A stretch of DNA of 64,000 nucleotides from Takakia lepidozioides (taxonomy: Eukaryota > Plantae > Bryophyta): NCBI GenBank assembly GCA_030704615.1, contig CM060733.1, forward strand, positions 48,980,001 through 49,044,000, given 5' to 3'. Below the pieces are notes generated by a model. It did no database searches. It saw nothing but the letters and a program-made list of their open reading frames with translations, and was not told the DNA's origin. The translations under genes and the position numbers were made by a program. The first letter of the stretch is position 1; each line of letters begins with the position of its first letter. Below, one piece after another: positions 13,008-60,811 of the stretch.

Positions 13008-13043
13008 GCGGGAAACCCTGTGCCCTAATGCCAGATTTCCCGC
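13008..13043. promoter_or_regulatory. Pair of inverted E2F-binding sites upstream of POLD1
   Basis: GCGGGAAA at 13008-13015 and TTTCCCGC at 13036-13043 match the E2F consensus TTTSSCGC, about 330-370 bp upstream of the POLD1 ATG. This is typical of DNA-replication genes. Confidence 0.75.
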
Positions 13044-27251: not shown

Positions 27252-27399
27252 GTTGTTTGCGTTTGTAGTGCATGTGCGAGCCTGCTGGGGAAGGGCAAAG
27301 AGGTCCATGGTTGCATCGTCAAAGCTAGAATTGTGGCAGATGTCATTCTGAACAATACCCTTGTGGACAGGGAGTGTTCAACAATATGGCTGAGCGAAG
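27252..27399 (+). pseudogene. PPR fragment (continuation)
   Basis: VCVCSACASLLGKGKEVHGCIVKARIVADVILNNTLVD; near-duplicate of 24320-24469. Confidence 0.8.
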
Positions 27400-27417
27400 G
27401 ATAGAGTGTAATGACTG

Positions 27418-34410: not shown

Positions 34411-34804
34411 TGTGCTACCGATCGTTCGCGATGTTATGCCTCATGGCCCTCGGTACTGGTTATTGTTTCTACGACACCTTTTTTTAAATATGAATTACAC
34501 CCCCTCTTCTCCCCTTAATGTTTTTTAAGAAAAAAGAGAATAAGGTGTCCACCTACCAATGGAAGGGAAGATAATAGGAATAATGTAAGAACTTAATGCA
34601 AGCGCGTCAGGATGGTCCAGCCCTGACACCCGTACCGCCGGTTCTTCGCCTCCGGCAGACATCGAAAGGCAGCCGGCTGGGCTCGGTCAATCCCTCCCCA
34701 CCCCCGCCCTCATCCCATCGGCGTCGTCGTCCCAGGCGCGTCGTCGCCCCCTGCGTCGTCGTTTTGCGACACCAGTCCGCCGCTTCCAGCAGTCCGCCAG
34801 TTCC

Positions 34805-36180
34805 CTGTAACCCCCGCCCCGGGTTCAACCATCACCCCCATGTAACCCTCTGTAACTCCGCCGAGTGTAACCCACACCACCATGTAACCCTTTGTAACCC
34901 ATATAACCCCATGATCCTCTGTAACCCTCACCACCATGTAACCCTATGTAACCCATGTAACCCTCTATAACACCGCAGAGTGTCACCCCCACCCCTATGT
35001 AACCCTCACTACATGTAATCCTCTATAACACTTTGCAACCCATGTAACCCTATGTAACCCTCTGTAACCCATGTAACCCTCTGTAACACCGCAGAGTGTA
35101 ACCCTCACTCCATGTAACCCTCTGTAACCCTTTGTAACCCATGTAATCCTCTGTGACCCTCTATAACCCATGTAACCCTCTGTCACCCTTTGTAACCCTC
35201 ACCACCATGTAACCCTCTGTAACACCGCAGAGTGTCACCCTCACCACCATGTAACCCTCTGTAACCCATGTAACCCTCTGTGACCCTCTATATCCCTCAC
35301 CAGGTGTAACCCTTACCACCATGTAACCCTCTGTAACACCGCAGAGTGTCACCCTCGCCACCATGTAACCCTCCGTAACCCTCACAAACCCTCTGTGACA
35401 CCGCAGAGTGTCACCCTCATCCCCATGTAACCCTCTATGGCTCTTTAACCCATGTAACCCTCTGTAACACCGCAAAGTGTCACCCTCACCCCTTATGTAA
35501 CCCTCACTCCATGTAACCCTATGTAACCCATGTAACCCTCTGTGACCCTTTGTAACCCTCACCACCATGTAACCCTCTGTAACACCGCAGAGTGTCACCC
35601 TCACCCCTATGTAACCCTCATTCCATGTAACCCTTTCTGACCCTCTGTAACCCTCACCACCATGTAATCCTCTGTAACCCATGTAACCCTCTGTGACCCT
35701 CTATATCCCTCACCAGGTGTAACCCTTACCACCATGTAACCCTCTGTAACACCACAGAGTGTCACCCTCGCCACCATGTAATCCTCACTCCATGTAACCC
35801 TCACAAACCCTCTGTGGCTCTGTAACCCATGTAACCCTCTGTAACACCGCAGAGTGTCGCCCTCACCCCTTATGTAACCCTCACTCCATGTAACCATATG
35901 TAACCCATGTAACCCTCTGTCACCCTTTGTAACCCTCACCACGATGTAACCCTCTGTAACACCGCAGAGTGTCACCCTCACCCCTATGTAACCCTCATTC
36001 CATGTAACCCTCTCTGACCCTCTGTAACCCTCACCACCATGTAACCCATGTAACCTTCTGTGACCCTCTATATCCCTCACCAGGTGTAACCCTTACCACC
36101 ATGTAACCCTCTGTAACACCGCAGAGTGTCACCCTCGCCACCATGTAACCCTCACTCCATATAACCCTCACAAACCCTCT
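34805..36180 (+). repeat. Subterminal TGTAACCC/TGTCACCC motif array A
   Basis: Dense CATGTAACCC(TC) units with the recurrent block TAACACCGCAGAGTGTCACCC. Higher-order marker TATATCCCTCACCAGG at 35289, 35702, 36069. Confidence 0.95.
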
Positions 36181-36301
36181 GGTTACACTCCGCTATTCCG
36201 GGTGACACCGGGATTGCAACTCATACACGTGTGAGTCAGTGCGGATATAATTGATTGCAAGCCGCCAGATTTTAATGAACCCCCGTCTTTCACTTAACCG
36301 A

Positions 36302-36745
36302 CACTACAAGAGATGAGTGTTTTAGGACTACGGATTTGGCGGAGTCATAAAAACGGCACTAGGTATACGACTACAGAGCGCTGAAATGCGTTGCAGTCAT
36401 AGTTTTATCACTTTATAGTAATGGATATCACTACATGACTCCGGAAAATTAAGGAGCATTGGTCAAACATTGTTGACCATGATGACAAGGATGGTTTTAT
36501 GACTAGTGTGATATGTTTGACTAGACGTGGACGACGTTTCATGGAATCTTGTGACTCCATGACTGAAGATGGTTTTACAGCTCTATTTATACGACTACAT
36601 CCCTACACGTGTCATTTTGAAAGCACATACATGAATGTATTCATCCATTGGATGAGTTTATCCATCGATGACATGGCATGTAAACTTATGAGTCCCTTAC
36701 TGCAAATTGTTTCATAACTCTATATATATGACTACATCACTACAC
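36302..36745 (+). mobile_element. CACTA-like terminal fragment
   Basis: Begins CACTACAAGAGATGAG, followed by many ATGACTA/TAGTCAT-type subterminal repeats. Similar to 59645. Confidence 0.55.
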
Positions 36746-37064
36746 ATGTCATTTAAAAGGCATATACATTAATGAATTCATTCAATGGATGGGTTCATCC
36801 ATCCGCCTATACGGTGTGTCGATTTGATATATGTTCAATAAATTGGACCTGGATGGACGTGGCTTAACAAGGATCGCAAGATATATGAGATTAAAATACG
36901 TTGTTGTACAAGGTTAGATCATGTGATGGAAATTATTTTGAATCATTAGATTTTACAGGATCTAACGGTCTAGATTGTTTAAGATCTAACGGTTTAAGAT
37001 TACACCGCCGAACTTTACACCGGGCTGGGACTTAGGCTCTTTTGTCTCCTGCGTTTCACCATCT

Positions 37065-38035
37065 ATTTGATGTTGTGTCATGGAACGCGATGATCGCAAG
37101 ATATGCAGGGGCGTGGGATGGAGGCTTTGCAGACCTTCCTACTCTTGAGCAAATGATGCAGGAAGGAGAAAAGGAGGAGGAGAGGAGACGAGGAGAAGAT
37201 CCCAACATTCTTGTGAGCTCGTCGTTTTTGGGAGAGAGACGAGACGAGGAGACGCTCGTCGTTCTTGGGAGAGTCAGCTTGGTCTTAGTAGGCCGTGTTT
37301 CAATCTCTGCCTGCTCAGCTGCACCGTGGTGGTTCGATCTCACATACCAATCCAACATTACCTGACTACAGATACAAACAGCACACACAAGGGGTCCTTT
37401 TGGGCTGATGGTCAGTCAAATCCTCTATGGGTCATGATACAAGGTAAAGGACAATGTGGTGAGGATACCTTCTTCTTTGACCTATTTCAGCCTATTTTGC
37501 TCTGTTTGGCAGCATGAAAGTATCCAAAAACAGGTAATAGAGATGAGGAGAAGCTTTGGAATGAACACTTTTCCGACCCCAGTCAATGGCGAGACAATGG
37601 AGACAAAAAGGTGAATGCATGTTGGACTACACTAGAGAGAAGTAGATGCAATTTAGAATTAGAACTACTGTAATAATTAGGGTTGGGGTTTGCTGGAAGA
37701 ACTTCACGCCGTCAGTGTCAGCTGCTAGCAGCAAGTATTCATGATTTGAGGGATGGAGGCTTTGGAGACCTATGAGCAAATTATGAGGGAAGGGATACTG
37801 AAGCCCGACCACATAACGTGTGTATGTGTTTGCAATGCGTGTGCAAGCCTGGCAGCCCTGGAAAAGGGCAGAAGGTCTATGGTTGCATCATCAAAGCTGC
37901 AAATGTACCAGATGTCATTTTGAACACTCCCCTGGTGGACAATATGTATGCCAAATGTAGGTGTAGCAAGGATGCAAAGGGAGTGTTCAACAACATGGCT
38001 GAACAAGATGTGGTGTCTTGGAGTACCATGATGAC
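37065..38035 (+). pseudogene. Captured PPR fragments and host-derived patchwork inside the MULE
   Basis: DVVSWNAMIARYA; ILNTPLVDNMYAKCRCSKDAKGVFNNMAEQDVVSWSTM. 37273-37490 matches 23555-23768. Confidence 0.8.
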
Positions 38036-39661
38036 CACCTTCCCCGGTGACTCTCTCTCTCTCTCCCTCTCTCTCCCTCTCTCCAACTACTTGTTTGGGA
38101 TTATCAATTTTTTTCCATAATACTTATTTTGGAAATACTATATATTTTTAATCCCAATTTTTAAGGTTTCATCCATACTGAATGAAATTTCTGTTATAAC
38201 CATAACTGGATGATTTATAGGCAGATATGCATTTCAATGCATTTTAGGTTTATGCTCCTTTGATTTAAACCTATTGAATGCCCATTTTTCATCCTAGTCT
38301 GATACCATCCATACCGGATGGTGGATGAAATCGCGGGTGGTTTTCCTTTAAGTGTCTCTCTGCCCTAGACACAGCACGATGTCGTGCGTGTTTTTTTTCT
38401 CTGGAAGAATGCAATGGCGGACGAATGCTCGATGGCGGCTGAATGCCCGAGCAGCAAGATCCGAACGGGTGTGTTCTTGTTTTTTGAACGCGCGATGATG
38501 GCAGACACTTTCATCTCCCGGATGGCAAATGACATACTGGTATGTTTGCCTACGTTTTTTCCTCATTGATGAAGCAACGGCGGTTATGGAGGTGGGGAAG
38601 CGGCCTGTATTACAAGATACAACCTGTCCTCAACTCTCCTCCCGTTGCATTCTGTTGTGCTCGTTCAAATTCAGATGATGAACACTGCAGCGTCCTACTC
38701 CACAAAAGATTGAGGTTCTTTGTGGTGTCACATCTATGCTTTCTTCTGCTGGTTCTGTGATCTTTGCATGCTTTATGGCTCATACCTGACATGGATAGCA
38801 ACTGTGAAATCCTATAATTCACCTTGCGCATCCTCACTAACGCACAAAACATTTTTTGTGTTTGTTTTTGGGACGGGCGCAGGTGAGGGATTTCACTTGG
38901 CATGAACTCTTTGGCTTGCAGATGATCTGGTTACTGTAGGAGGGATAAGATATGCTGCAAGCTGCCGTTGTTGCAATTTTCTGCTTCAAAGCTGCTTCAA
39001 GGGGGATATGCCTTAAACCTACTTTGATTTCTGGTTCTTGGTAACCAAATCTGTTAAGTCAGGGAAGTAAATGGGCTGGGCCTCCTAGAAATCAGACCTT
39101 ATTGTGAAGGTTCGGGCTGGTTGTGATGACAAGGGTTTGGTGATGCAAGTGTGACATTGGATGCATTTTTCCAAACCTGTTTTCTGGCCTTTTGGAGAGT
39201 CAGACAGTGCTGTTTATGCCTCACCAATTTAGAATGTATTAAGTAAGGCATTGGGTAAGCCTTTTTAAGAACACATACATTCTTTCAGGCTCCCCCATGG
39301 AGATTATAACCTGATTACAAACTGGTATTTTTGAGGATCTCTCTAAAACTTGGCAGAGTGACTGGATAAGGCCCTGGGATACATACCATAGCCCTGCATC
39401 TACTTATGGAAGTACAATCAGTTCAGCTTGTGCTTTTAGGAACATACAAGTCCTTTAAAGCTGTAATAGGGAATTGTTTTCATCAAAGCTCTCACTCTTA
39501 GGCCTGCTGGAATGGTTTTCTCAAAGACCTGTTGAGCTTACAACATACTTGTTTAAGCTATTTGAACCCAAGAATTACCAAGCCAGTATTTTTAAAGGGT
39601 TTTTTTTATTACGAACTGTATTCTTAAGCTCCCCCCAGAGATTGGGAATGTGACATGGTAA

Positions 39662-39664
<3 letters not shown>

Positions 39665-39706
<42 letters not shown>
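39665..39706. repeat. (CT)n microsatellite
   Basis: Perfect CT run. Confidence 0.9.
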
Positions 39707-39709
<3 letters not shown>

Positions 39710-40147
39710 TCCTCTGATACATGATACATATATACATGATTTGTGCAGAGACATGGATAGCTGAAGGAGCAGGGATAGAGTGCCTGGGTCCAGATTCATC
39801 CAAGAGGGCCGGATTTCAATCTCCAGATTACATATGATTCCCTGTGGAAGGATAGCTACAAGAAACCTGCATGGATAGATGATCAATTGGTTGGTCTTGA
39901 GCTGAAGAGCACGACCCCTGCAGGGATGTCTCTCCATCTGTAGATCTTTTAGGAAGTGGAAGGCTAGGCCTAGGGCCCAGCTTTCTTATGACATTGTTAG
40001 CTGATTTTCAGTTCTTCTCCTTAGCTCGGTGCCTTTCTGTTTCCAAGTTATGGCAGTAGTTTCTGGCTGTAGTCTCTTTTCCTGCTAGACTCTTTAGCTC
40101 TATGCAGACCCCCTTCTTTGCTTGCCTTCCTTCTTATGTCTGTGTCT

Positions 40148-42860
40148 TCACTACATGTAACCCTTTATAACACCGCAGAGTGTCACCCCCACCCCTATGT
40201 AACCCTCTGTAACACTTTGCAACCCATGTAACCCTATGTAACCCTCTGTAACCCATGTAACCCTCTGTAACACCGCAGAGTGTAACCCTCACTCCATGTA
40301 ACCCTCTGTAACCCTTTGTAACCCATGTAATCCTTTGTGACCCTCTGTAACCCATGTAACCCTCTGTGACCCTTTGTAACCCTCACCACCATGTAACCCT
40401 CTGTAACACCGCAGAGTGTCACCCTCACCCGTATGTAACCCTCACTCCATGTAACCCTCTCTGACCCTCTATATCCCTCACCAGGTGTAACCCTTTCCAC
40501 CATGTAACCCTCTGTAACACCGCAGAGTGTCACCCTCGCCACCATATAACCCTCTGCAACCCTCACAAACCCTCTGTGACACCGCAGAGTGTCACCCTCA
40601 TCCCCATGTAACCCTCACTCCATGTAACCCTCACAAACCCTCTGTGGCTCTGTAACCCATGTAACCCTCTGTAACACCACAGAGTGTCGCCCTCACCCCT
40701 TATGTAACCCTCATTCCATGTAACCCTCTGTAACACCACAGAGTGTCGCCCTCACCCCTTATGTAACCCTCACTCCATGTAACCCTCTGTAACCCATATA
40801 ACCCTCTGTGACCCTTTGTAACCCTCACCACCATGTAACCCTCTGTAACACCGCAGAGTGTCACCCTCACCCCTATGTAACCCTCATTCCATGTAACCCT
40901 CTCTGACCCTCTGTAACCCTCACCGCCATGTAACCCTCTGTAACCCATGTAACCCTCTGTGACCCTCTATATCCCTCACCAGGTGTAACCCTTACCACCA
41001 TGTAACCCTCTGTAACACCGCAGAGTGTCACCCTCGCCACCATGTAACCCTCCGTAACCCTCACAAACCCTCTGTGACACCGTAGAGTGTCACCTCACTC
41101 CATGTAACCCTCACAAACCCTCTGTGGCTCTGTAACCCATGTAACCCTCTGTAACACTGCAGAGTGTCGCCCTCACCCCTTATGTAACCCTCACTCCATG
41201 TAACCCTCTGTAACCCATGTAACCCTTTGTGACCCTTTGTAACCCTCACCACCATGTAACCCTCTGTAACACCGCAGAGTGTAACCCTCACTCCATGTAA
41301 CCCTCTGTAACCCTTTGTAACCCATGTAATCCTCTGTGACCCTCTGTAACCCATGTAACCCTCTGTGACCCTTTGTAACCCTCACCACCATGTAACCCTC
41401 TGTAACACCGCAGAGTGTCACCCTCACCCGTATGTAACCCTCACTCCATGTAACCCTCTCTGACCCTCTATATCCCTCACCAGGTGTAACCCTTTCCACC
41501 ATGTAACCCTCTGTAATACCGCAGAGTGTCACCCTCGCCACCATATAACCCTCTGTAACCCTCACAAACCCTCTGTGGCTCTGTAACCCATGTAACCCTC
41601 TGTAACACCACAGAGTGTCGCCCTCACCCCTTATGTAACCCTCATTCCATGTAACCCTCTGTAACACCACAGAGTGTCGCCCTCACCCCTTATGTAACCC
41701 TCACTCCATGTAACCCTCTGTAACCCATGTAACCCTCTGTGACCCTTTGTAACCCTCACCACCATGTAACCCTCTGTAACACCGCAGAGTGTCACCCTCA
41801 CCCCTATGTAACCCTCATTCCATGTAACCCCTCTCTGACCCTCTGTAACCCTCACCGCCATGTAACCCTCTGCAACCCATGTAACCCTCTGTGACCCTCT
41901 ATATCCCTCACCAGGTGTAACCCTTACCACCATGTAACCCTTTGTAACACCGCAGAGTGTCACCCTCGCCACCATGTAACCCTCTCTGACCCTCTGTAAC
42001 CCTCTGTGACCCTCTATATCCTTCACTAGGTGTAACCCTTACCACCATGTAATCCTTTGTAACACCGCAGAGTGTCACCCCCATCCCTATGTATCCCTCA
42101 CTCCTTGTAACCCATGTAATCCTTGGTGACCCTATGTAACCCGTGTAACCCTCTGTGACCCTGTGTAACCTATGTAACCCCATGTAACCCTCTCTGACCC
42201 TCTGTAACCCATGTAACCCTCTGTGACCCTCTATAACCCTCACCAGGTGTAACCTTCACCACCATGTAACCCTTAGTAACCCTCTGTAATACTGTAGAGT
42301 GTCACCCTCACCCCTGTGTAACCTCACTCCATGTAACCCTCTGTGACCCTCTGTGACCCTCTGTAACCCTCATCAGGTATAACCCTCACCACCATGTAAC
42401 CCTCCATAACCCGTTTATCCCTCTGTAACACCGCTGAGTGTCACCCTCACTCCATGTAACCCTCCCATGTAACCCTATGTCACCCTCTGTAACCCATGTA
42501 ACCCCATGACCCTCTGTAACCCTTTGTAACCCATGTAACCCTCTGTTACTCCGCGGGGTGTAACCCTCACTCCATGTTATCCTGCATCGTGTAACCCCAA
42601 TGTAAGCTTGTATCATGTTATCCCATATACCCCTCTCCGTGTAACTCCAGTTCCTCGTAACCCCATCATCCCTGTAACCCTCTGCACGTCAGCCCTTTAG
42701 CTCCGCCTCGTGTAACCCTCATTGTGCAACTCTCACATTGTAACCCCACCATGTAACCCCGATACTGTATCAATCCCCTCCGTGTAACCCCCGATTGTGT
42801 CACTCATAGCTCGTGTCACCCCGGATCATTTATCCCCAACGCATGTCACCCCTGTTCGTG
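40148..42860 (+). repeat. TGTAACCC/TGTCACCC motif array B
   Basis: Same units as array A, with marker at 40470, 40968, 41469, 41900. Degenerates toward 42860. Confidence 0.95.
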
Positions 42861-43084
42861 TAGCCCCTTGGTGCCCGGCAAAAATTGGCGGGCTCCAAGA
42901 GGTGTCAGATATTTTGAATTCAAACCTGGGTTACACGATTCGGTGACATCAAAACCCACGTGTAACTCCATCATCGCTCGTCATTTTCACCAGGTGCGTA
43001 GACGACGTGCAGTCCCGAGGGCTCCGCTGCGTTGCCCGCGTGTGTTATGCGATTTGTACTGTACTGGTGGTACTGTTGCTGCTA

Positions 43085-46000
43085 ATGGCATGTGTTGCCG
43101 CGAAGGTGCTAGACGAGGAACGCAAAGCAGCATTGGAATCAAATGGTTTGAAAGATGAGGCGGGAGAACTCTGTCATTTGCAGCATTTGGTATCTCATTT
43201 GAAATGCATCCTACAGCTGCCCATAGACGGGCTTTTCAATCACACAAACCTCCGTTGGATACGCCAGGTTTCCCAGGGAAAAGGGAAACGGATATCCATC
43301 GAAATAGCTGTCGTTCCATGGTCTCGCATTCCTGATTTTCTGGAGGGAGAAAGGAGTAGAGTGGATGGGAAGACCCAATTTTATGTTCAAGATTGAAGGT
43401 ACCGTGAGTTGCCAGATTTGACAACACCGCGTGCAAACAGTTATCGTCAGTGGCATAAGTAAGTCATTTATGAGGGTTGTATAACATTCCCAGCCCCACT
43501 TCTTTCTGCTGGCCTAGCAAAGTCGTATATGGCGATAACCCTCCTCGCTTTATATGCTTTTTTTGCAGGTACCACTGCTGCTACGGCCCAATAGATAGGC
43601 GCACAGACCCGCCGATTGTGAAGAAGAAAGAAAAACCGATAGCAGCCTCCGATAATCAAAAACCAGTCAAGCAAATCAGACGTAAGGCAGCGGATTTCGG
43701 AGAGTCATACAAACGTGGGTGTACGTGTAGCTTCAAAGTTGGCCAGTGTTTTCTAGATTCAGAGTTGGCAATCATCACATACTTCCAGAAACAGTATGTG
43801 GATGCAAAAGGAAAGCCATGTCATGGTTCAGCTGACCCCTCTTCCCATTTCTCGCGATTCGTGCATGCCCCTCGTCTCAGCCAAGATATGAAACAGTGGA
43901 TCGTCGATAGTCTTCGCAGTGGCCTATCTCCAGCTATGATTATGACACAACACACTCAATAGCTCCAGGAAGCTTGTGCGTCTGAGCCAGGCATGGAGTG
44001 GAGTCGCGATTGTTTCTTGTTCGAGTACGACGTGAGAAACATTGCCGACAAGCTTGCGATTGAGAGTTACAAAAAACGATGCACAAAGTGTACGTATGTG
44101 GGTCGATAGCAATCCTGAAAGCGTCTTCTTCTACCATGAAGAGATAGCGCCAGTGGCGGGTGATTTGAAGTTTGTAATTGGAATACAAACGGAGTGGCAA
44201 AAACAGAAAATGATCGACCTGGGACACAACCGTGTGGTATCCTGCGATGCAACATTTGGGACCAACGAAAATAAGGTATTCGTGTCACGCTTTACCTTTC
44301 TTTGCATTTTGAAATGTGAGTGCCATGCAACTGTTGCCAATATTATAACACTCACCTTATTCATTTTTGTACCATTGCGACATTGCAGTTCCCAATGTAT
44401 ACCATGATGGTGTTCGACGAATGGCTCAACGGCATACCTGTTGCTTATATTATATCAGCGAGAAACAAAACGACTGACCTGAGCCTCTGGATGAAACGTC
44501 TTCGCGACCGACTTCTTCAGAGCAAACCAGATTGGAGGCCAAATGCTTTTGTTGTCGACGATGCAGACGCAGAAATCAATGCTATCAGGTACACGGCTAG
44601 AAGTTATAATGTTCTGAGTCACACAGTAATTCACACTACAAGTTGCATGCACGAGGGGTTTCATGGATCGGGCTACACTGCTGCTAGTTACACTGAGAAT
44701 CACAATAAGAGTTAAACTGCCAGTTACACGAGGGGGTGCATTGCTGCCTGTAACACTTGGAGTTATATTGTCAGTTGCTTGAGGGGTTACATGGATTGGG
44801 TTGCAGTGCTGTCTGTTACACTGAGGGTTACACTATCAGTTAGACAGATGGTTATACTGCCTTGAGTTGGACGGAGGGTTACATTGCTGTGAGTTAGACC
44901 GAGGGTTACACTGCTGTGAGTTAGACCGAGGGTTTACACTGCTATGAGGTAGACAGAGGGTTACACTGCGAGTTACACTGGGAGTTACACGGCGTGTCAT
45001 CCGCAATCCTGCATGGATTAGGTTGCACTGCTATAGCCTGTGAGTTATACTGGGAGCATCGCAGAGGGTTGTATGGGTTGGGTCGCTCTGAGAGTTACAC
45101 GGTGTAACATGGATTGCGTTACAGCGCTGCGAGGGGTTATATGTGTTGGGTTACACTGCTGTGAGTTTCACTGATAGTTACATGACCAGATGCACGAGGG
45201 GTTACATGAGTCACACTACTAAGAGTGACACTTTGAAGAGTTACACTTCTACGAGTTACACTGCGAAGAGTTCCTCTGATAAGAGTTACACTGACAAGAG
45301 TTACACTGATGGATTGGGTGGCATTTGATGTGTGTGCGTGCAGGGAATCGTTTGCAGACGTAGCGATATTTCTATGCCTTTGGCATGTTCGCCGCGCTTG
45401 GCTGAAACATTCGTGGCGTAAGATGCCCGATCCATACACTCGCAATGCTGTTTTAAAACAACTTGGCGACGTAATGTACGGCATTAACGCCTGTGTGGGA
45501 GTCACCCCAGAAGAGTGGGCACTGGAGCGACTGGAAGATTTGAATTATTCCTATCCGCTTGCGCGTGACTTCCTACATTACATCAGAATGGAATGGGTCC
45601 CAAAACTGAGCATGTGGATCACGGGGCTCGTTATATTCCCCACGCAAGTCAGGATACTAATGCCGCATTGAATCTTGGCACGGAAATTTGAAGGCTCGTT
45701 TACGCTCGGGAAAGCAAAGGCTTGATGGCAGGAGAATCGATTGGCTGATCAGCAAACTCGTGGGTCCTGTTCTAACCCACTATTGGTATAGAGATAACTT
45801 GAAATCGAAAGGCTTCAAAAGGAATGTACAACAGGAGGAATTTATCAGTAATGTTGTTTGGACTGCAAGGGAGATCCCTGATGTCAATGTTCATTTGCCC
45901 ACTGTTCCTGGTCATCCGGCGATTGTGGATAGTGTTCAAACGGCCGATCGAAGCTACACAATCTATGCACCTGCAACCACCTGGGCTTGTTGTGATTGTC

Positions 46001-46404
46001 CATGGGCTTTGAAGGGTAACTTGTGCAAACATCAAATCCGCGTTCTTCAATTGATGAAGCCAAATCTGAAGGAAGGGCTTATTGTGAAGCTCTGTGGCAC
46101 AAAGCTCGGGACCATTCATGGAGGTCTTCACATGTTGATGAAATCGGAACTTCCAGATATTGATGCAGAGGAGGAAGTTGTGAATCTAGCAGAGCCTACG
46201 GAGTGCTCAGCGAGTGAAACAATGCGCAAACATCTGCTTGCCGAGCTTCGTTGTGTTCGTGGGAGGCTGTCCACTTTACAAGTTAGAATCAACAAAGGTC
46301 TGTTGCACCCTCTTCAAGCAGTTCCATTCATAAAAAATGATGATGGAAACAACATGTCCCTTGCCAGGAAAGTAGATTTTGTAGACCGGTTCCGTAGTAA
46401 GTGA
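43085..46404 (+). pseudogene. MULE transposase 1 with SWIM zinc finger (4 exons; stops and frameshifts)
   Basis: Exons 43085-43458, 43569-44275, 44389-44588, 45344-46404 (GT-AG). Motifs YHCCYGP, KRGCTCSF, GKPCHG, CDATFGTN (D1), FVVDD (D2), CLWH, DTNA.ESWH (E), SWIM CDCPWALKGNLCKH. Confidence 0.92.
44589..45343. repeat. Transposase intron filled with GG/AGTTACAC motif
   Basis: Dozens of (G/A)GTTACAC copies between the GT donor at 44589 and the AG acceptor at 45343. Confidence 0.85.
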
Positions 46405-50600: not shown

Positions 50601-51231
50601 CTTTTGATCCATTCCTCCGAGCAATGGCCAAGATACTCAAAATGGACAACACACCAGAAGGAAATGCAGATGTAGCCTCCCTTGCTAGTCGTGGAGATGA
50701 AGATAAACCCCTCGCAGATTCGCAACAATCAGACGTGGTGTTGTCCAATGGAGTTTTCCGAGGCTTCATGTCGTGAAGCAAGACCGTATGAGCAGATGAG
50801 GAAGGTTGAGATCCACAAAATACACTCTTAGAAACCTCAACACAATCCGAATTATGAGACCCCAAGCTCGCCGAATCTGCAACCTCCTCCTTCAATTTAC
50901 AACTCCCATTTGTCGCAGCTTGATCGTTCTTTCTTGCAATAGAAGTGTGCCTCTCATCATGTGACTGTGTATAGCTCGTACCTGTGACACGGTACTTGGA
51001 GAAAGTGTCTGGAAACAACTCCCATTGCTTTTGGCCGTCATTGAAAACTGGAAGCAACACTGTGGAGGCATCATCATCTCCATCATCCTCCAAAAAAACT
51101 GAACCCGGAACAAGTTTGAATCTATTGCATAACCAAGGTTCTGGGATAATGCACTTGTTTCCATTGCAAGGATAACGAACCACTTTTGCATCAGGTGGAC
51201 ATGAAAGCACTGCATATTTTGGTGTAGACAT
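47693..51231 (-). pseudogene. MULE-like transposase 2 with Cys/His-rich (GCM/WRKY-like) N-terminal domain and SWIM finger
   Basis: ORFs 51231-49180, 49144-48194 and 48154-47693 join via one frameshift and one in-frame TGA. Motifs CVGKLICQSSTC..CSFC..HCGAR..GFHNHP, VFDHVKR (D1), FMADAAGAN (D2), CLYHW, TNLSEAVH (E), SWIM CDCPDF...PCKH. Confidence 0.88.
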
Positions 51232-52454
51232 TTGGCAATGCCCTCAAAGTTTGAGAGAAGATGCAAAATGAATGAAAGCGCACATCTTGCAAGACCTTAT
51301 GCAAATACATTAAATGGCTTACATTACTTATGTGTATCATCAATCCAGAAGGTCCAAATTTTTTGAGGCATGTGCTCCATCCATATTATTCTCTGACAGA
51401 AACAACTAAATGGACTATCCCCATTTTTTAAGACGACGGCGCCGTTGTTGAGATCTTAGAATCCAATGTACTGCCTTCTTCTTATGAGCATATGAAACAT
51501 AAATGCTCTGCATGTTTCCATTTATTTTACAACCAATCGTTGATTAATCGTCCAACTATGAACTGACACACTAGACGGCACAATTTATTTACAATCAAAT
51601 CCCATGACATGTATGTTGATTTGTTCTTTGATTACTCATGTATGAGTAATGAGTACAAGTATTTGTGGCGACAATTGGACTCTAAAACCAATAAATTGAT
51701 TAAGACACCCATAACAAAATATTTAGTTACTTTATCACTTACTTTATATTGTATTATGAAGGCGCCGCCACAAAGTAACATGTCAATCGTACAACCATCT
51801 TCTGAGGATCCACGTGTAACCCATGTAGTCCAAAAAACACTAACGCCAGAGTGTATAAAAAATGTTCACATTTCAGATTTGGCCAATTTGGCCTTAGCCT
51901 TCGCTCTCGCCCCCATTTCCCCCCGCTCTCCTTGGCGGGGGCAGGTTTGAACCCGCAACCTTGTGGAAAATACACCTCAACCTTACCAACAAGCCATGCT
52001 CTATTCAATGAAACAACCTCTACTTTTTTGTTAATAAACTGTTTCTTTCAGTTAAACTTGTTGCCATTACTACATGACTAACCCGGTATCATTACTACAC
52101 TAACGTAGTCTAGTATACTTGCACATTATCCCTTGCCACTCCCCCAAACAAACACACACAAACTACACAAGCACTTAACACGTCTCTAGTCTCTACACCC
52201 TGGAGACTCCCGTTGCGAAGAGGAGACGGAGGCGCCGCATCTCGGCTTTATACTATACCACCCCGAGGCAACGAGCTGTTGCGGCGATGGGGAGGAAGAA
52301 GGACACTCGAGGGGGAGGCGTTGCTGGTGGTGGTGGTGGTAGAGGCAAGCTGCGGACGGAGAAGGTAAGCTGTAGTTTTGTTTTTTTTCATGACCTGCAC
52401 TTAGGCATATGCGCCATCGCATAAGCCCCACCAAGCTGCTCCTTATCTAGCACA

Positions 52455-53555
52455 TCCGCCGGCGCAGATGCCTAAGTCACTTCAAGTCTCACAAGTTTGC
52501 GAATCTCCACACATACACACAACCGTCTCCGCCGGCGGAGACAGCTCATTCCCCTTGGTTTTTTCTGATGCTTGGAAGGGCTGGGCTGCCACCTCCGCCG
52601 GCGCATACCGTTGGAGCTGGGATGCTCGCATGTTTCAGGAAGTGCTCCTCTACTCCCATCCCGTTTATTTTTTTGCATGCTCATACGTTGCTGATGCTCC
52701 GAGCGGGTTGGGCTGGCGTATCCGCTGGCGCATACCTGTGCAGCAGGGCTGCTCAAATGTTTCAGGAAGTTCTCCCCTTTTCCATCTTCTTTGTTTTTCC
52801 GCATGCTGATGCTCCGAGTGGGCTGCGCTGGCATATCGCCGGCGCATACCCATTGAGTACATTCTTTTTTGCTCAGATCATAGGTTTCAGGAACCTCCTG
52901 CAAGCGTCTCCACCGGCGGAGACACTTGGAGCTTGGTTTTTTTTTGCATATTCCCTGTGTTACGGAAGCTCCAAAGCGCCAAGGCTGCCACCTCTGTCAA
53001 CACAGACCCGTGCAGCAGGGCTGCTCACATATTTCAGGAAGTTCTCCCCCCCTTCCATCTCTTTTGTTTCTCCGCATTCTCATAAGTTGTTGATGCTTCG
53101 AGCGGGCTGGGCTGCCATATCCGCCGGCGCATACCCATTGAGCACAATCTTTTTTTGCTTAGCTCCTAGGTTTCAGGAACCTCATGCAAGATCTCCGCCG
53201 GCGGAGATGCTTGGAGCTTGGTTTTTGTTGTATATTCCTTGTGTTACGTAAGCTCCAAAGTGTCGAGGCTGCCACCTCCGTCGGCGCAGACGCTTGGGGA
53301 ACCTTCCCTATTTTGGTTGATCACAGTATTCAAGTATCTCAAAGCTTCTACGTTGCCACCTCCACAACTCCACATGCTTCCATAGGCCTAGTTTGATCTT
53401 TCAAGGTGCTCCTGTATGTTTGGCTACAACCTCCCTTCCATGGTATGCGCCGGCGCATATGCTTGGAGCTCCTTGAGCAAAATTTCTTCAAGGGCCTCAA
53501 ATCTTGTCAAATTTTGAGTTGGTTGCACATATGTGTCATATGCGCCGGCGTAGGT
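52455..53555. repeat. Dispersed CGCCGGCG motif array within degenerate repeats
   Basis: About a dozen copies including variants, e.g. 52458, 52530, 52596, 52837, 53123, 53195, 53448, 53543. Confidence 0.8.
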
Positions 53556-53786
53556 GGTCGGAGGTCCTCTGTTGGGATGCTCACGCCTGTATTCTGCTGC
53601 AAGTTGTAAGCTTTGAAAGACAAGGATATTCATGGAATTAGTTGACTATCCAAATTCATTTGTTTTCTTCATGCAACCATGACACTGAACTGCTCTTTTT
53701 ACATATTATACATTCACACATGTGCTCTTCTCATACACTGACATCTTGAACTGTTTTGGTCTATGGAATTAGGAAATTACTACTAC

Positions 53787-54286
53787 NNNNNNNNNNNNNN
53801 NNNNNNNNNNNNNNNNNNNNNNNNNNNNNNNNNNNNNNNNNNNNNNNNNNNNNNNNNNNNNNNNNNNNNNNNNNNNNNNNNNNNNNNNNNNNNNNNNNNN
53901 NNNNNNNNNNNNNNNNNNNNNNNNNNNNNNNNNNNNNNNNNNNNNNNNNNNNNNNNNNNNNNNNNNNNNNNNNNNNNNNNNNNNNNNNNNNNNNNNNNNN
54001 NNNNNNNNNNNNNNNNNNNNNNNNNNNNNNNNNNNNNNNNNNNNNNNNNNNNNNNNNNNNNNNNNNNNNNNNNNNNNNNNNNNNNNNNNNNNNNNNNNNN
54101 NNNNNNNNNNNNNNNNNNNNNNNNNNNNNNNNNNNNNNNNNNNNNNNNNNNNNNNNNNNNNNNNNNNNNNNNNNNNNNNNNNNNNNNNNNNNNNNNNNNN
54201 NNNNNNNNNNNNNNNNNNNNNNNNNNNNNNNNNNNNNNNNNNNNNNNNNNNNNNNNNNNNNNNNNNNNNNNNNNNNNNNNNNNNNN
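53787..54286. other. Assembly gap (N run)
   Basis: 500 N. Confidence 1.
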
Positions 54287-57044
54287 TTATTTTATACATC
54301 GGCTCAAAATCTGTCTCTTCCAAGTAAAACTGTAACGGACTAGAAGCCAGGAAGGCATCGCCATAATAAAACTTCACTTCGAGCGCCCCAGGAGGGTCCG
54401 ACACCATTCTGAACTTTGTCAAGTACCGTTGTTTTAGTCTGCACAACAAACCACACATTACGAACATTACGATGCATCATACAAGAGTTATAATCAATAT
54501 TCAAAATCAGAGAGGATCAAAGTACAATGAGGTACCTCGAACGCTCCCGCAAGTGCTTGGCAAGGACCTCTTGCTGCTGGACAACGTCAACCTCCGAGAC
54601 CCCTGCACTTTTGCCTTTCGGTTTGGTTCGCTGTTTTTTGGGTGCGACAAGAACAGATACTTCTTTGTCAGCGCTAGGGGGTTCAGCCAACCGCTTTCTT
54701 TGAGCAGGCGGCCGTTTTGACCTCCTGGAATTCTCTGCAACCCTGACAATGCCGCCGGTAGGGGGAATTTCTGAGCCAGAGGTGCCTTGTTCTGAGTTTG
54801 CTGCAAGTGCTGAAGACTGCACTCCCTCGTCTGAGACGTGCTGGGGAGGTGATTGACCAAGGGCAGAAGTGTCACAGCTCACCTCCTCGGTGCTACCCCT
54901 ATCAGTGTCACCCTTCTGTTCAAACCCCTTGTCAGAGTCACGCTTCTTAGTGTCACCCTTCTCTTCGGCTACCTCCTCAGTGTCACGATTCTCAGTGTCA
55001 CCCTTCTCTTCGGCTTCCTTCTCAATGTCACCCTTCTCTTCGGCTACCTCCTCAGAGTAACTGTCGCGCACCTCACTTCGGTAAGCTCCCCTTCAAGTCA
55101 TAGTTACTCGCTTTGATGCGCGCGCCTGACTCCCAACCTGGCCGCCGGGCCAACTTGGAGCTTCGGCTGCTCACCGGGACATAACGGTCCCCCTTCGCTC
55201 TCCCACTAAAACTACTCCCCTTATATATACTTCTGTAGCTGTCCGCGGGGGTTTCATAACCAGCCATGCCATTTTATGGCGAACCACCACGAAAACCCTC
55301 GACTCCCGGTGATGAGTCGCGGTGAGTCTTGGCCCACTCACCACGGCCCCTATGGACCGTGATGAGTCCCAAGACTCCCCACGACTCCCACCACGAGGTC
55401 TCCGCCCCCATGGTGAGTCCTATGCCACCCCCACTAAGTCCCGCTAAGCTACCACCACCCCTTGTGGAGCCACCCCCACCGCAACCCGGTGTGCGGGGCT
55501 CCACCTAGTGAGCGCCTCCGCCTCCTTGAGTGCCTTGGGCACTCAAGGGTGCTTCAGCCCCCCATACCTATCGCTGCCGCTGCCCCCACCACAGGGGCAG
55601 CCCCTCATGTGTCCCGACCCCCTGCCCTCAAGGCAAAGGGCCGCGACAGTCACGCATCTCAGTGTCACCCTTCTCTCCGGCTACCTTCTCAGTGTCACTG
55701 GTCTCATGTCACCCTTCTCTTTGGCCGCATTAATAGTGTCACTCTTCGCAGTGTCACCCTTCTCATCGGGTTCCTTCCCAGTGTCACTCTGCTGAGTAAC
55801 AATCTTATGTGTGTCACCCTTGGCAGTGTCACTCTTCTCAGTGTCTAGATGCTCCGCAACATCCTTCTCTTCGTGACTCTCCACAGTGAAACGCTTCTCA
55901 GTGTGACCCTGCTTTGTGTCACCCTTCCAACTGACAACCTCCTCGGTGACACCCTTCCCCGTGTCACGCATGTCGATGTCACTCTTCTTTGCATCAACCT
56001 CCTCAATGCCATCCTTGATTGTGTCGCCCTTCTCCGCACCCTCCAAGACCATGTTGACTAGCAGAAGACCGTCATCCGTCGCGACTAGTGGCCGTGGCAA
56101 AGGAGTGTCACCTTCCACGACTAGTGGTAGTGGAATGTCATCCATGGCAGTGTTACACTCACTGACATCTGCCATGTGGGTTGGCTGTGGGGTGTCACCC
56201 CTATCAGTGTAACCCATGTCAATGTCACTCTCAACGGAAGTTGCAGTGTTCACGGGCAATGGTGTGTCACCCACGACAATGTCTCTCACGGCATTGTCAG
56301 CCACACCGGTATCCGCAGTGTCACCCTGAGGTGCAGTGTAACCCTCCTTCCCTGTTGCTCCTCTCTGCACAGTGTCACCCTCAGGTGCAGTGTAACCCTC
56401 GGTTTCAGGGCATCCTCCCCTTGCAGTGTCACCCTACGCATCAATGGGACCCACGAAGGCTGGGTCATTCTGAGAGAGGTTGACCACATGATCCTGACAA
56501 ATACTTACATTGCTGCATCGAGGGTTCAACCCAACATCTCCAGATTCAAAGTCATACACAGACTCTGGGTCAAGCAGGTCCCCGATTCTTCGATTAAGAC
56601 CTTCAAAAGAAATGACTGGGGCTGCGGACAAAGAGGTTCGCACTTGGGTGTTCCACCTTGATGTATCATCTTCAGTATTAGTATCAGAATTCATGGGCAA
56701 ATCCCGCGTCAAGTCTGCTAGGTTCACCCCTAAGTGCAGCTGGGTTGAGTACAATTCACCAACCTGCGACAAAGATACAACGGCAGATTGACTTGGAATG
56801 ATGTCCTCGTCATGTACATCGTCGCTCTGCGGGGCGGAAATTGGCCCATCGCTCGTCTGCGCGCCCCCTGCGCCCTCTGTATCGCATTGTGGAGGGGCCC
56901 CATACACAACTTCGTGAAGCTCACGTTGAGCCTCAAAAAGGTTTTTGAACGCATTGGCGACTTGATTGGTCATGAGCTCGGACTCATCTGCATCGGGGAA
57001 AAGACAAAGGTTTTTAGTCGTGGAAAGAGGTTTTTGAAAGTGCA

Positions 57045-57455
57045 AGGGTTACACTATGTAAGGGTTACACTGACTAGGACAAGACAGTGGTTCGGATTAT
57101 ACGATGTGGGTTATACCACCCTGTTTGAGATAGTAGTTTGCAATGGGTTACACTACCATGGGTTACACTACTGAGATTACACAACGAGAGGGTAACAAAT
57201 CTAGGGTAACACAGCGAGGGGTACCATTAGGGGTACACTGATTACAGGGTTACATACTCCGAGGGTTACACTGATTACAGGGTTACACACAGCGAGGGTT
57301 ACACTGAGTACAAGGTTCCACATAGCGAGGGTTACACTGATTACAGGGTTACACACAACGAGGGTTACACTGAGTTACAAGGTTCCACATAGCGAGGGTT
57401 ACAATGATTACAAGATTACACAGAAATGGGTTACACGACGAGAGGGGTGACAGTG
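57045..57455. repeat. Intronic GGGTTACAC array
   Basis: Tandem GAGGGTTACACTGATTACAGGGTTACAC units. Confidence 0.9.
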
Positions 57456-58369
57456 GATGGAGTAACACTTACAGAGATACCAAGGCACTACAGACCCAAG
57501 GTCTCTCATGTACTAGATGCCCAAACGCGCATTGAAGTCCATTTCTGTTGGTGATTCGCTGAAGAGGCCACAACACCAAAGCTGGATAAACGATTCTCTC
57601 TGTTGGATCGCAAAGTGATGGGCGGCGCGACGACGGCTTGCCTTGCAAAACTGTATAGCTCCGTTGATCTTAATTGACCGGTCACCCCACTCTTCTGTAC
57701 TCAAACTCGATCTTAAGTCTTCGAGCTCAGAATCCAAGGTCGCAATTCCGTCACCAGGTTGTGCAAAGTACATCAGACTAAAGCCGTAATACTCATCGAC
57801 CAGGTCCTTCACCTTTGAGGCCGTAAGAGCACTTTCCAGAAGTTCAGTCGTGAACCCCAACCTGGGATGCGTTTGGGAAACTGACCTGCCATGATTTCTT
57901 ACATCGTTGTGGGCCAGAATTCTCAAAAGGAGTGGTGGCGGTCCAATGTGCGGTTTGGTGAGATTCTCCATTTGACTGATCAATCCTTCGGCAAAACCAC
58001 GAGTGAATTCCAACGGATCTGGAACAACCAAACCTTTGATTCCATCTACAGTAATAGTGATGACAAGAGGATTTGAAGTTCTGGCATCGTCAAGGTCGGT
58101 ATTGCCAACAGCTAGTTCGTCCATCGTGTCATCATCATGTGAGGCTTGGCTCTCTCGATGGACTCGTGTAAGTCTCCCACCTTTTTTCTTTTTCTGCTTT
58201 GGCATGTCAGGATGCCCAATGCTCTCTAAATACTCCTTCACCCGATTCAATTCCTCTATCATTAACGGACCATGATCCGGCTGGGCAGTAAACGCCTTGT
58301 GGGCAGCAACAACACTGTCCATATCATCGCTTCTAAGATGATATCGAGCTCCCTGCGCAATACAACGTG

Positions 58370-58570
58370 AAGGGTTACACCAGAGAAAAAGGTTACAACA
58401 CGAGGGGTTACACATGAAAATGGGTTACAAACAAGATGGGCTACACGGGGTTACACAGAGGTAGGTTACACACCATAGGGGTTTTTAAAAGGGGTCCTCT
58501 GTAGGTGGGTTACACTCTGGGTTACACGCCACAGGAGAGACAGGGGGGGTAACACAAGGGGTTACATGGA
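58370..58570. repeat. Intronic GGGTTACAC array
   Basis: About 10 GGGTTACA copies between 58353 and 58620. Confidence 0.85.
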
Positions 58571-59644
58571 TAGACAACAGCCCAAAATTTGAAAAACAGA
58601 GAAATGGCAGGGAATCCAACTTGATTGTCTGTCGATAGAACCCAACTTGATTTTGCAGCTGTCGCATGGACTGTGCCCTCGCCTCGCGCAACAAATTCTT
58701 GGAATGCCGGCCAAAACCCCTTCTCATTGACATTCGGAAATGGGAACTGAGGAATAAGGCCATGCGGTAGCAAGAGGATTGAACTTGGAGTTCGCTTTCG
58801 CAAGATGAACCTTGAGCTCCGGTTTCCCCGGTTTCCAATGTTGATTTTCTTTGCAATAGGGACAGGTAGAGGTGGGCTCAATCGCCGCTTGTCTCTCTCG
58901 TTAGAAACCTGCCGAATAGAAGGACCAGGGACAGAAACAGCAGGAGCACCAGAAGATGGAACCTCTGTAGCAGAAATAGCCGAAGAAGGTACAATAGCAG
59001 GCACTTCAATAGGATCTGCAATCTCACCCAAAGCCACCCTATTTTGCAGAATCCATGCATGATATGCATCAACAGAAGAAGCTGGAACATAATTCATCAC
59101 ATTTTCAATAGCCATGGCATGCTTGAGCTCCTCATCAGGAAACGGTTTTGTTCCTTTCGGTCTGGCCATACATGCGCCTGTTCCTTCGACAATATGCCGA
59201 TTCAATCTGCTCTTATCTACCTTTACTGCCCCACATTAAGGACATTTGAACTTAGGCCGGCCCTTTGATCCCTCCACCTTGGCCTCTCTACACCTGGTGT
59301 GGCAGTACGCGATCATTGTAGCATGCTCATGCTCAGTGTGCCAGAAGCGAACTCGTTCGCCATCCCTTTTCAAGTGATCAAATGGAATAGTAGCCTCTCC
59401 AGGGAACAAATAACAATCAGCCATGACAAAAGAAAAAGCTGACAGAAGAGAAGAGAAGAGCAAGAGCAAGAAAAGACAAGACAAGAAAAGACCAAGACCA
59501 AGAGAATTCCGAAGAACGCACAACAGGGAGCACGCACAGCAAGGAGTGCAGGAAGAATAGGAAAGGCTGCGAGAAGGGGAAAATTGAACAATGATCAAAG
59601 AACGAAGAACGAAGCTAGCTAGATGTCACCCGTAAGGCATGTCG

Positions 59645-60050
59645 CACTACAACAGATGAGCGTTTTTATGACTGCACATATGACTATTTTTTCAGTCCTA
59701 TATGCGTTCATGACTATATCACTTTGTAGTGAAAAACGCCCTGTCATAGCGACTAGTCTTTAGGACTGTGTTTTGCAAGTCATAGCCGTGACTGCGTGCG
59801 TGGCACCTGGAGTCATGCTGTAGAGAGGATGTAGTCACAACTATATGATTTATATATGACTAACTATATGACTACATGTCCACAAAGTATAACTCCATTG
59901 GAGAGGCGTCAGAGAGACATATGTAGCACTCCGGATGTGACACGTGTCCACATGGACAACATATATAACCCACACGTGGGAAAGAAATATCGTATCATAT
60001 AATGCCACGTTGCCATGATGTAGTCATGAGTATATAACTTCATGACTAAA
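59645..60050 (+). mobile_element. CACTA-like terminal fragment
   Basis: CACTACAACAGATGAG followed by dense ATGACTA/TAGTCAT repeats. Confidence 0.55.
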
Positions 60051-60811
60051 GTGGTTTTTTAATAATATTTTAATTTAATACATTAAATCATACAATTATA
60101 ATATTTAGATTATTAATTGATTTAAATTCTCATTAGGTTTCTAGGAAAATAGAATGGAAACCATTGTTGTCTTTTTTTATTATTTTTATTTTTGTTAACA
60201 AAGAGGGACAGTGGGGGACAGTGGCCTCTAGAACTTTATAGGTAATTGACATAAAATGTCCTTGGATACAAAGAGGAAAAATAACCTCTGGATAGAGTGC
60301 CATAGAGGCTGAAAGAGGAGGGTTACATAGGGGTGGGGGTGACACTCTGCGTTGTTATAGAGGGTTACATGGGTTACAGAGGGTTACATGGTGGTGTGGG
60401 TTACACTCGACGGAGTTACAGAGGTTACATGGGGGTGATGGTTGAACCCGGGGCGGGGGTTACAGGGAACTAGCGGACTGCTGGAAGCGGCGGACTAGTG
60501 TCGCAGAACGACGACGACGCCGATGGGATGAGGGCGGGGGTGGGGAGGGATTGACCGAGCCCAGCCGGCTGCCTTTCGGAGGCGAAGAACCGGCGGTACG
60601 GGTGTCAGGGCTGGACCGTCCTGACGCGCTTGCATTAAGTTCTTACATTATTCCTATTATCTTCCCAATGGAAGCCAATAGTGACTCCCTTTGGGATGAA
60701 GATACACCATAATTTACATTCCCTTTTCTTTTTTAAAACATAGACCAATTTGGCTACCATGCACATACATAAATGAAATTGTGATTGTTGGCAATGGGTT
60801 CCGTCTTTATA

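Follow-up and report, generated by a model that had tools for sequence, protein, structure and literature searches.

The 64,000 nucleotides of Takakia lepidozioides contig CM060733.1 analysed here (positions 48,980,001 to 49,044,000, hereafter called the window) contain a genuine DNA transposon of the Mutator type; it measures at least 26 kb, its ends match, and it is flanked by a perfect target-site duplication. It appears rather likely that this is a decayed Mutator-like element (MULE) of the type of its transposase gene Tnp1, with a native part of about 14 kb that was enlarged by nested or captured DNA. The element would then probably be an unusually large, otherwise ordinary dead transposon copy, parts of which are other DNA lodged inside. 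Ends, duplication, homologies, lesions and the distribution of a family motif are directly observed.

As assembled, one pair of terminal inverted repeats (TIRs) encloses a unit of 26.1 kb. The left TIR (34566..35007, plus strand, about 442 bp) begins GGAAGATAATAGG and comprises blocks that are 96-100% complementary to the right TIR (60318..60665, minus strand, about 348 bp): 34565-34661/60570-60666 (97 nt, 96%), 34663-34731/60510-60578 (69 nt, 100%), 34754-34847/60423-60516 (94 nt, 97%), and 34920-35007/60318-60405 (88 nt, 97%). The termini are TGTAACCC ends, their outermost 25 nt are identical to each other and found nowhere else in the window, and the TIR orientation is the one expected for a single element. 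Directly outside both termini lies the 9-mer CAATGGAAG (34557..34565 and 60666..60674), which occurs three times in the window with both strands counted; the chance of such a match at the right place is about 4e-6. G34565 pairs with C60666, and a 7-bp duplication (AATGGAA) with repeats that are one base longer fits the letters equally well. MULEs are known to have TIRs of 14-500 bp and duplications of 8-11 bp (PMC6446971), typically 9 bp. The terminal 24-mer has no match in JGI metagenome contigs, and the reconstructed empty site has neither a paralogue in the window nor an ORF crossing it. An earlier note on this DNA had proposed TIRs at 34566 and 60665 with a perfect 9-bp duplication, and both are confirmed by the block alignment and the 9-mer count. 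Its assignment to Mutator is backed by the long TIRs, the 9-bp duplication, and the MULE and SWIM transposase homologies described below, and the single bounded unit it described is present in the assembly.

A 10-bp motif, TGTAACCCTC, has 117 copies in the window, every one of them within the element, as compared to 0.1 expected. Copies lie at the two ends of the element, within and behind the Tnp1 gene (in its intron and downstream), and in the right-hand ORF region, so that the ends, Tnp1 and the right-hand orphan ORFs are linked by a common motif. The left subterminal array (34840..36183, plus strand) consists of TGTAACCCTC and its variants, all in plus orientation, and a second stretch (40154..42720, plus strand) displays the same motif in the same orientation; this one-sided array totals about 3.9 kb. 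A motif-rich spacer downstream of Tnp1 (46500..47090) is the final stretch with the family motif before block B, and a 33-bp tandem repeat (57229..57422, minus strand) carries the motif in minus orientation. Motif searches thus corroborate the arrays listed in the earlier note, and we consider TGTAACCCTC copies to be putative transposase-binding sites. The motif is absent from three internal blocks, at 36184-40153 (block A), from about 47.1 kb to the assembly gap (block B), and at 55056-55647 (block C).

Tnp1 (43190..46404, plus strand) is a multi-exon MULE/SWIM transposase pseudogene according to its Pfam SWIM and MULE matches and its exon map. Its C-terminal SWIM zinc finger (PF04434, E = 6e-4) is placed just above the gathering score. 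The Tnp1 exon alone remains below threshold for Pfam MULE (PF10551, E = 0.024), and its homologue L004 (41-55% identical) reaches 28.5 bits versus a gathering score of 27.6; together with the D..D..CxxH..E signature readable in the transposase translations, this homologue score identifies the MULE DDE domain. The gene is broken by an in-frame stop (43960-43962) and by three frameshifts, close to positions 44075, 45625, and 45662, and its intron at 44.8-45.3 kb holds motif arrays. Over 44914-46424, part of Tnp1 exists in a second copy (L006), which is 98.5-99% identical and has an open ORF of 393 aa; the Tnp1 family has open copies, as judged over this one compared stretch.

Block B (47100..53786) is at least 7 kb long, contains a second transposase gene and a palindrome array, and has its right edge hidden in the gap. 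Tnp2 (47693..51231, minus strand, about 1180 codons) is a transposase pseudogene of the Mutator superfamily and has no introns. Its N-terminal region is rich in Cys and His and is followed by a DDE core and, at the C-terminus, a SWIM finger (PF04434, E = 4e-4, just above the gathering score). Two lesions interrupt the gene, a frameshift at about 49250 and an in-frame stop codon (48194-48196). The transposase core has no Pfam MULE match. A homologue search returned 994 relatives, liverwort proteins among them. The structure model (pLDDT 82) has as its top PDB match ISCth4, an IS256-family transposase (E = 4.6e-4), and PF10551 is present in nine of the ten family sets of the nearest Atlas models, the top set being a SWIM-domain cluster. 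By its modelled fold, Tnp2 is thus predicted to belong to the Mutator superfamily. Upstream of Tnp2, at 52400..53560, there are about 10 CGCCGGCG-centred palindromes (e.g. TCTCCGCCGGCGGAGA), in which two 9-mers have 7 exact matches each as compared to 0.02-0.09 expected. Two loci with Tnp2 homologues, L002 and L009 (the latter from Riccia), also carry palindrome arrays. With these 994 relatives, the Tnp2 clade is large; it has no Pfam model, and in bryophyte-grade plants it is accompanied by palindrome arrays.

The Tnp2-family HMM matches Tnp1 pieces only marginally, at the second catalytic Asp. Among 8 related loci from other assemblies the two types never occur together: there is no Tnp1 homologue in the Tnp2-homologue loci L001-L003 and L009, and no Tnp2 homologue in the Tnp1-homologue loci L004, L005, and L007. 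Inverted-repeat and short-word searches of 46.4-47.75 kb versus 51.2-54.9 kb found no TIRs or duplications above chance that would belong to block B itself. A shared CAATCAG-type 9-mer, CAAAATCAG (47281 and 54502), was considered as marking its edges and rejected; no inverted termini adjoin it, and such a match would be expected at random. Both transposase genes announced in the earlier note are present, but neither is intact, and no uninterrupted transposase frame is left in either Tnp1 or Tnp2. Errors of the assembly might account for the single-base frameshifts, but not for the two stop codons. Since both genes are broken, this copy is no longer capable of moving on its own.

Block A (36184..40153) is a motif-free insert of 4 kb in the array, containing two (CT)n tracts and fragments resembling PPR genes at about 37042-38120. 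The host fragments described earlier are recovered here as PPR-type peptides such as DVVSWNAMI and as 71-85% DNA identity to a PPR-like region at 23.5-28.5 kb of the window; the fragments have no match in Pfam. The register of the motif array nearly resumes on the far side of block A, in which no inverted repeats, duplications or ends of its own were detected. Block C (55056..55647, 592 bp) is a nested dispersed repeat of very high copy number, with a read depth of 100-400 times that of its flanks in all four runs and heterogeneous loose ends at its edges (55062 and 55648). One contig of run X1 joins 55055 to 55648 without block C, its short side of 30 nt being one under the 31-nt bar. The RNA-like run X10 covers solely the high-copy repeat.

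To the right of the gap, the region at 54287..59598 (minus strand) contains the family motif and ORFs of 120, 227, 300, 203, 229, and 184 aa, some of which are split only by single in-frame stops, and some of which are translated motif arrays. No homologue, mudrB included, was found for them in Pfam, two Atlas searches and a homologue search, and a single-sequence fold (pLDDT 38) was too poor for use. Nothing beyond these ORFs speaks for the multi-exon accessory gene that had been suggested for the element. Rfam and tRNA scans, as well as exact-protein look-ups of the window ORFs, were blank.

Based on these data, we hypothesize that a Tnp1-family element entered this site by cut-and-paste transposition, which would have produced the 9-bp duplication. 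Its native parts would be the TIRs of about 440 bp, the one-sided motif array, Tnp1 reading inward from the left, and the orphan ORFs reading inward from the right, altogether about 14 kb. At least 12 kb would then be foreign to the Tnp1 family, with block A as a 4-kb piece of PPR-gene-like host DNA within the array, block B as a stretch of at least 7 kb that derives from another lineage of the Mutator superfamily and extends into the gap, and block C as a 592-bp high-copy repeat. The secondary status of these blocks and the times of their arrival are inferred; nesting is deduced from composition and not from junctions, because blocks A and B have no ends of their own and the right edge of block B lies in the gap. 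This reading is drawn from one copy. That the whole is one cargo-carrying transposon, as the earlier note had it, holds for the bounded unit but is unproven for the cargo, given the motif-free blocks, the lack of co-occurrence of Tnp1 and Tnp2, and a palindrome array that block B has of its own.

The blocks may, on the other hand, already have been aboard when the element last moved, such that a nest of at least 26 kb was truly transposed. Six lesions in the genes contrast with a flawless duplication and flawless outermost 25 nt, which fits a defective copy mobilized in trans, and L006 provides a copy elsewhere that is open over the one stretch compared. However, with a divergence between copies of about 1-1.5%, the 18 duplicated bases should have accumulated only about 0.1 changes, so that little about age can be read from a perfect duplication, and the contig lacking block C suggests another copy without it. 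We regard this course of events as unlikely.

Slightly less likely still is a true giant family, in which all of the 26 kb or more (including the two transposase genes, the PPR-like block and the arrays of either kind) would be canonical and transpose as a unit. It would agree with the single TIR pair and perfect duplication that bound everything, with internal element ends not having been found, and with the interior at 51.2-57.1 kb, which is multi-copy in run X1 and collinear at about 99% in the independent run X5, although this collinearity might just as well come from one and the same locus sampled in a different plant. Against it stand the lack of the family motif in blocks A, B, and C, the separation of the two transposase types in the 8 related loci, the nature of block C as a separate dispersed repeat, and the X1 read depth, which is 3-5 times as high at 51.4-53.8 kb as at 54.3-57.1 kb. 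In a specific form of this idea, to which we assign a slightly smaller chance again, an undescribed giant Mutator family of land plants of at least 27 kb would stably join a classical MULE with a deep-branching module (the intronless transposase with its palindrome array and, perhaps concealed in the gap, a DNA-modifying partner), mobilized by the outer ends. As it stands, the element documents an uncatalogued MULE family whose one-sided motif array is exceptionally long.

The assembly gap (53787..54286, 500 N) calls for caution about the assembly, as it is probably larger than written. Contigs of X5 reach 1095 nt beyond 53786 and 1728 nt ahead of 54287; because these two independent-run contigs extend so far into it, the gap probably measures 1.7 kb or more and thus far exceeds the 500 bp shown. 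Among the read-derived contigs of four runs over 51200-57100 (5901 letters), no record spanned the gap. ORFs running through it are artefacts of X residues. The earlier argument that the join is real because the duplications match is sound, as the chance for two unrelated contig ends to share the flanking 9-mer is about 4e-6. It is very improbable that the sides are not contiguous and the element consists of halves of two copies, as might be thought from an unspanned gap whose length is merely an estimate and into which the motif-free block B extends, since the outer flanks share the exact 9-mer at the termini, which places both contig ends in one insertion, and the TIRs are oriented as expected.

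Among known systems, MuDR and the MULEs of plants are similar to the present element in their 9-bp duplication, TIRs of hundreds of bp, and a DDE transposase with MULE domain, CxxH motif and C-terminal SWIM finger. As in MuDR, a second inward-reading ORF region is located at the opposite end, in the position of mudrB. MuDR is about 5 kb long, whereas the element described here has at least 26 kb, a one-sided array of about 3.9 kb, right-hand ORFs without homologue, and two broken transposases. The MULEs of arthropods span 1.4-10 kb (PMC13359780), and the Pack-MULEs of rice reach up to 7 kb, most being 1-2 kb and without transposase genes (PMC6431247). Pack-MULEs are comparable in that host-gene-like fragments, here of PPR type, lie between Mutator TIRs and in that they are not self-mobile. 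In contrast, two transposase remnants are present here, the size is 26 kb, and the fragment is located inside a motif array.

Rehavkus elements have a 9-bp duplication, long TIRs and, beside one of their ends, a minisatellite (PMC6446971, Table 1). They are alike by description in these three features and unlike in their hosts (arthropods and annelids) and in their PHD finger, in place of which SWIM fingers are found here. Giant transposons of red algae, of the Mutator and Plavaka (EnSpm) kinds, are reported to carry accessory genes (ParB-like and N6-adenine methylase) together with inverted-repeat arrays in a preprint that cites Chondrus crispus elements (bioRxiv 10.1101/2025.02.11.637652). 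Block B resembles them in its transposase with a phased palindrome array; the size class, 15-20 kb, is comparable as well. No ParB or methylase is present in the visible sequence of the window (at least 1.7 kb, where one could lie, being hidden in the gap), nor in L002; in L009, the gene lying head-to-head with the Tnp2 homologue contains an exon that matches N6_N4_Mtase (E = 3.5e-4, below the gathering score). Unlike the red algal transposons, the element resides in a land plant, and the fold of Tnp2 matches MULE/IS256 and not EnSpm.

Cut-and-paste transposons are thought to become less efficient beyond a few kilobases of cargo. There are few descriptions of Mutator elements of more than 10 kb (PMC6431247). 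Bounded by one pair of ends and a perfect duplication, the present unit of at least 26 kb would be a useful test case, if further copies demonstrate that it is moved as a whole.

The Mutator-type transposon at 34566-60665 is a real feature of this sequence. Comparison of 34566-35007 with 60318-60665 displays inverted-repeat blocks of 97, 69, 94 and 88 nt (96-100% complementary) which tile both arms, the greater length of the left arm being due to a 22-nt insert and additional units of the motif. The terminal first 25 nt are present at two places only in the window, namely the two ends of the element. Directly outside both termini lies CAATGGAAG, with one further occurrence in 128 kb (window, both strands). 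The long inverted repeats and perfect 9-bp duplication claimed in the earlier note are thereby borne out, and its assignment to the Mutator superfamily is correct in view of the duplication, the inverted repeats and the MULE (Mutator-like element)/SWIM transposase homology. If the repeats are taken to extend by one more base (G34565 pairs with C60666), a duplication of 7 bp fits the letters equally; 9 bp is the natural duplication length because MULE transposases are found inside the element. The assembled unit between the duplications comprises 26,100 bp, and the predicted empty site of its insertion would read GTCCACCTAC-CAATGGAAG-CCAATAGTGA. Given the 1-1.5% divergence between copies, the perfect 9-bp duplication is uninformative on insertion age.

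The 10-mer TGTAACCCTC occurs 117 times, every copy within the element (expected 0.1). A looser form of this family motif, also written TGTAACCC, was used for mapping. It fills 34.8-36.2 and 40.15-42.7 kb (together about 240 copies, + orientation throughout), 44.8-45.3 kb in an intron of the left transposase gene (Tnp1), 46.5-47.1 kb, 54.5-56.5, 57.2-57.4 and 58-59 kb, and, in minus orientation, the right inverted repeat. All of these share the motif, which ties the outer ends to Tnp1 and to the right-hand region. The same search yielded no copies in three internal stretches, blocks A, B and C. We read the element as a Tnp1-type MULE of about 14 kb in its native state, now enclosing at least 12 kb of foreign DNA and coding-dead. 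Of the proposed single giant cargo transposon, one bounded and real Mutator unit stands, while the motif-free blocks and the lineage evidence on block B speak against the remainder. The single copy read is compatible with arrival of the foreign DNA either before or after its last transposition.

Tnp1 (43.19-46.40 kb, + strand) is a multi-exon gene with SWIM and MULE homology. Its last exon encodes a SWIM finger (E 6e-4), and one exon gives a weak MULE match (E 0.024); a homologue at locus L004, 41-55% identical, passes the Pfam MULE threshold with 28.5 bits vs 27.6. The sequence itself displays the signature D...D...CxxH...E, as DATFGTNE, VVDDADAEINAI, CLWHV and IESWH. Comparison with L004 and the Logan contig L006 displays four lesions in the window copy: one stop codon in frame (43960-43962) and three frameshifts, at about 44075, 45625 and 45662. 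L006 is 98.5-99% identical to 44914-46424 and carries an open 393-aa frame, so that a more open Tnp1 copy or allele exists. At 1300-1383, L006 holds 84 extra in-frame nt (28 aa) relative to the window copy, at 46211/46212.

Block A (36184-40153) encodes peptides typical of PPR proteins, although a Pfam search of the block gave no match. Elsewhere in the window, at 23.5-28.5 kb, lies a degenerate PPR-like region with 71-85% DNA identity to the block. The register of the motif array almost resumes from one side of block A to the other, as expected if DNA had inserted into a continuous array. The interior of the block contains two (CT)n microsatellites (38040-38090 and 39660-39715). In the PPR-like region (23500-28500), 6-11 kb from the element, segments on the downstream side are duplicated in tandem (27562-27937 and 28112-28504). 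The neighbourhood is rich in transposable elements; Ty3/gypsy remnants nearby comprise an integrase SH3 domain (21891-22664, minus strand, E 6e-19) and a gag domain (31489-31992, plus strand, E 1e-10).

Block C (55056-55647) is a GC-rich stretch of 592 bp. In four sequencing runs out of four, including the RNA-like run X10, it is covered 100-400x as deeply as its flanks, and loose ends vary at both borders, which makes it a separate dispersed repeat. One contig of run X1 joins 55055 to 55648 and lacks the block, its short side of 30 nt being just under the acceptance bar. The borders carry 9-nt inverted ends (ACTGTCGCG and CGCGACAGT), and AGT (3 bp) may be duplicated there.

Block B extends from about 47.1 kb to the assembly gap and contains palindromes and a second, intronless transposase gene, Tnp2 (51231 to 47693, minus strand, about 1180 codons). 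The N-terminal region of Tnp2 is rich in Cys and His; the protein also has a DDE core and, at the C-terminus, a SWIM finger (E 4e-4). Neither its core nor ten relatives match a Pfam family. An exhaustive search returned 994 relatives, of which the best reach 40-46% identity; annotated proteins from two liverworts, Riccia sorocarpa and Calypogeia fissa, are among the 994. As modelled by AlphaFold (pLDDT 82), the core has MULE-domain clusters as its nearest ESM Atlas neighbours and the IS256-family transposase ISCth4 as its nearest PDB structure (E 4.6e-4); within the Mutator superfamily, IS256 forms the bacterial branch. Two lesions break the window copy: the frame shifts near 49250, and a stop codon lies in frame at 48194-48196. 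Downstream of the gene, in AT-rich sequence (47400-47600), about 60 nt are directly duplicated at a spacing of about 133 nt.

A Tnp2-family HMM barely matches Tnp1, so the two transposases represent distant lineages. No Tnp1 homologue was found within roughly 4-10 kb per side of Tnp2 homologues at four loci (L001-L003 and Riccia L009), and no Tnp2 homologue near Tnp1 homologues at three (L004, L005, L007), whose short contigs (2.5-7.5 kb) extend past the gene by no more than about 1-4 kb. Palindromes accompany Tnp2: about ten, centred on CGCCGGCG, lie 1.2-2.3 kb upstream of the window copy, and seven TTCGGATCCGAA sites lie upstream of the homologue in L002, where the Tnp2-type gene has palindrome arrays around it (region 4380-6750). 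In L003, an inverted duplication of about 2 kb (7530-9581 vs 12325-14337, arms 75-90% identical) interrupts the homologue. Several palindrome families surround the gene in Riccia L009 (Riccia sorocarpa CM100801.1, 1-18200), one of which, GTCTCCGGCGGAGACCGCCGGAGA, resembles TCTCCGCCGGCGGAGA of the window. There, the neighbouring gene in head-to-head arrangement contains an exon (4574-4897, minus strand) whose match to the N6_N4 DNA methylase family has E 3.5e-4, below gathering. Transposase, palindrome and methylase together look like a conserved module in bryophytes; the visible sequence of the window yielded no ParB or methylase sequence. X1 depth over 51.4-53.8 kb is 3-5x that over 54.3-57.1 kb. 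Together with the separate occurrence of the two genes, the palindromes and the methylase-like exon, this marks block B as a fragment from a separate lineage of elements; a search for its own ends found none, and its right edge falls in the gap.

The gap (500 N, 53787-54286) was addressed by comparing four public runs with 51200-57100 (5901 letters), among which no record spans it. The argument for one insertion from the matching duplication holds nonetheless: two unrelated contig ends would have the same flanking 9-mer with a chance of about 4e-6, hence both sides of the gap belong to one insertion. In X5, a run from a different study, the first 705 nt of an 1800-nt contig match 53085-53786 and 1095 nt follow, while the last 686 nt of a 2414-nt contig match 54287-54978 and 1728 nt precede. 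If both stem from the element locus, the minimum sizes are about 1.7 kb for the gap, in place of 500 bp, and about 27.3 kb for the element; the contigs could derive from another family copy instead.

On the minus strand of the right-hand region (54.3-59.6 kb), six ORFs of 120-300 aa follow in series, some parted by single in-frame stops only and two being largely motif-array translations. Searches of Pfam, of the Atlas and for homologues gave no match for any of the six, and the multi-exon accessory gene of the earlier note is unconfirmed. The region is like mudrB of MuDR in position and orientation, by analogy only.

Duplication and repeat lengths of the element lie within the range of MULEs, with duplications of 8-11 bp and inverted repeats of 14-500 bp (PMC6446971). 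In size it far exceeds MuDR, arthropod MULEs (1.4-10 kb; PMC13359780) and Pack-MULEs (at most 7 kb; PMC6431247). Even for the architecture of block B there is a precedent in red algae, from which giant Mutator and Plavaka elements have been reported that carry ParB-like and adenine-methylase accessory genes and inverted-repeat arrays (bioRxiv 10.1101/2025.02.11.637652).
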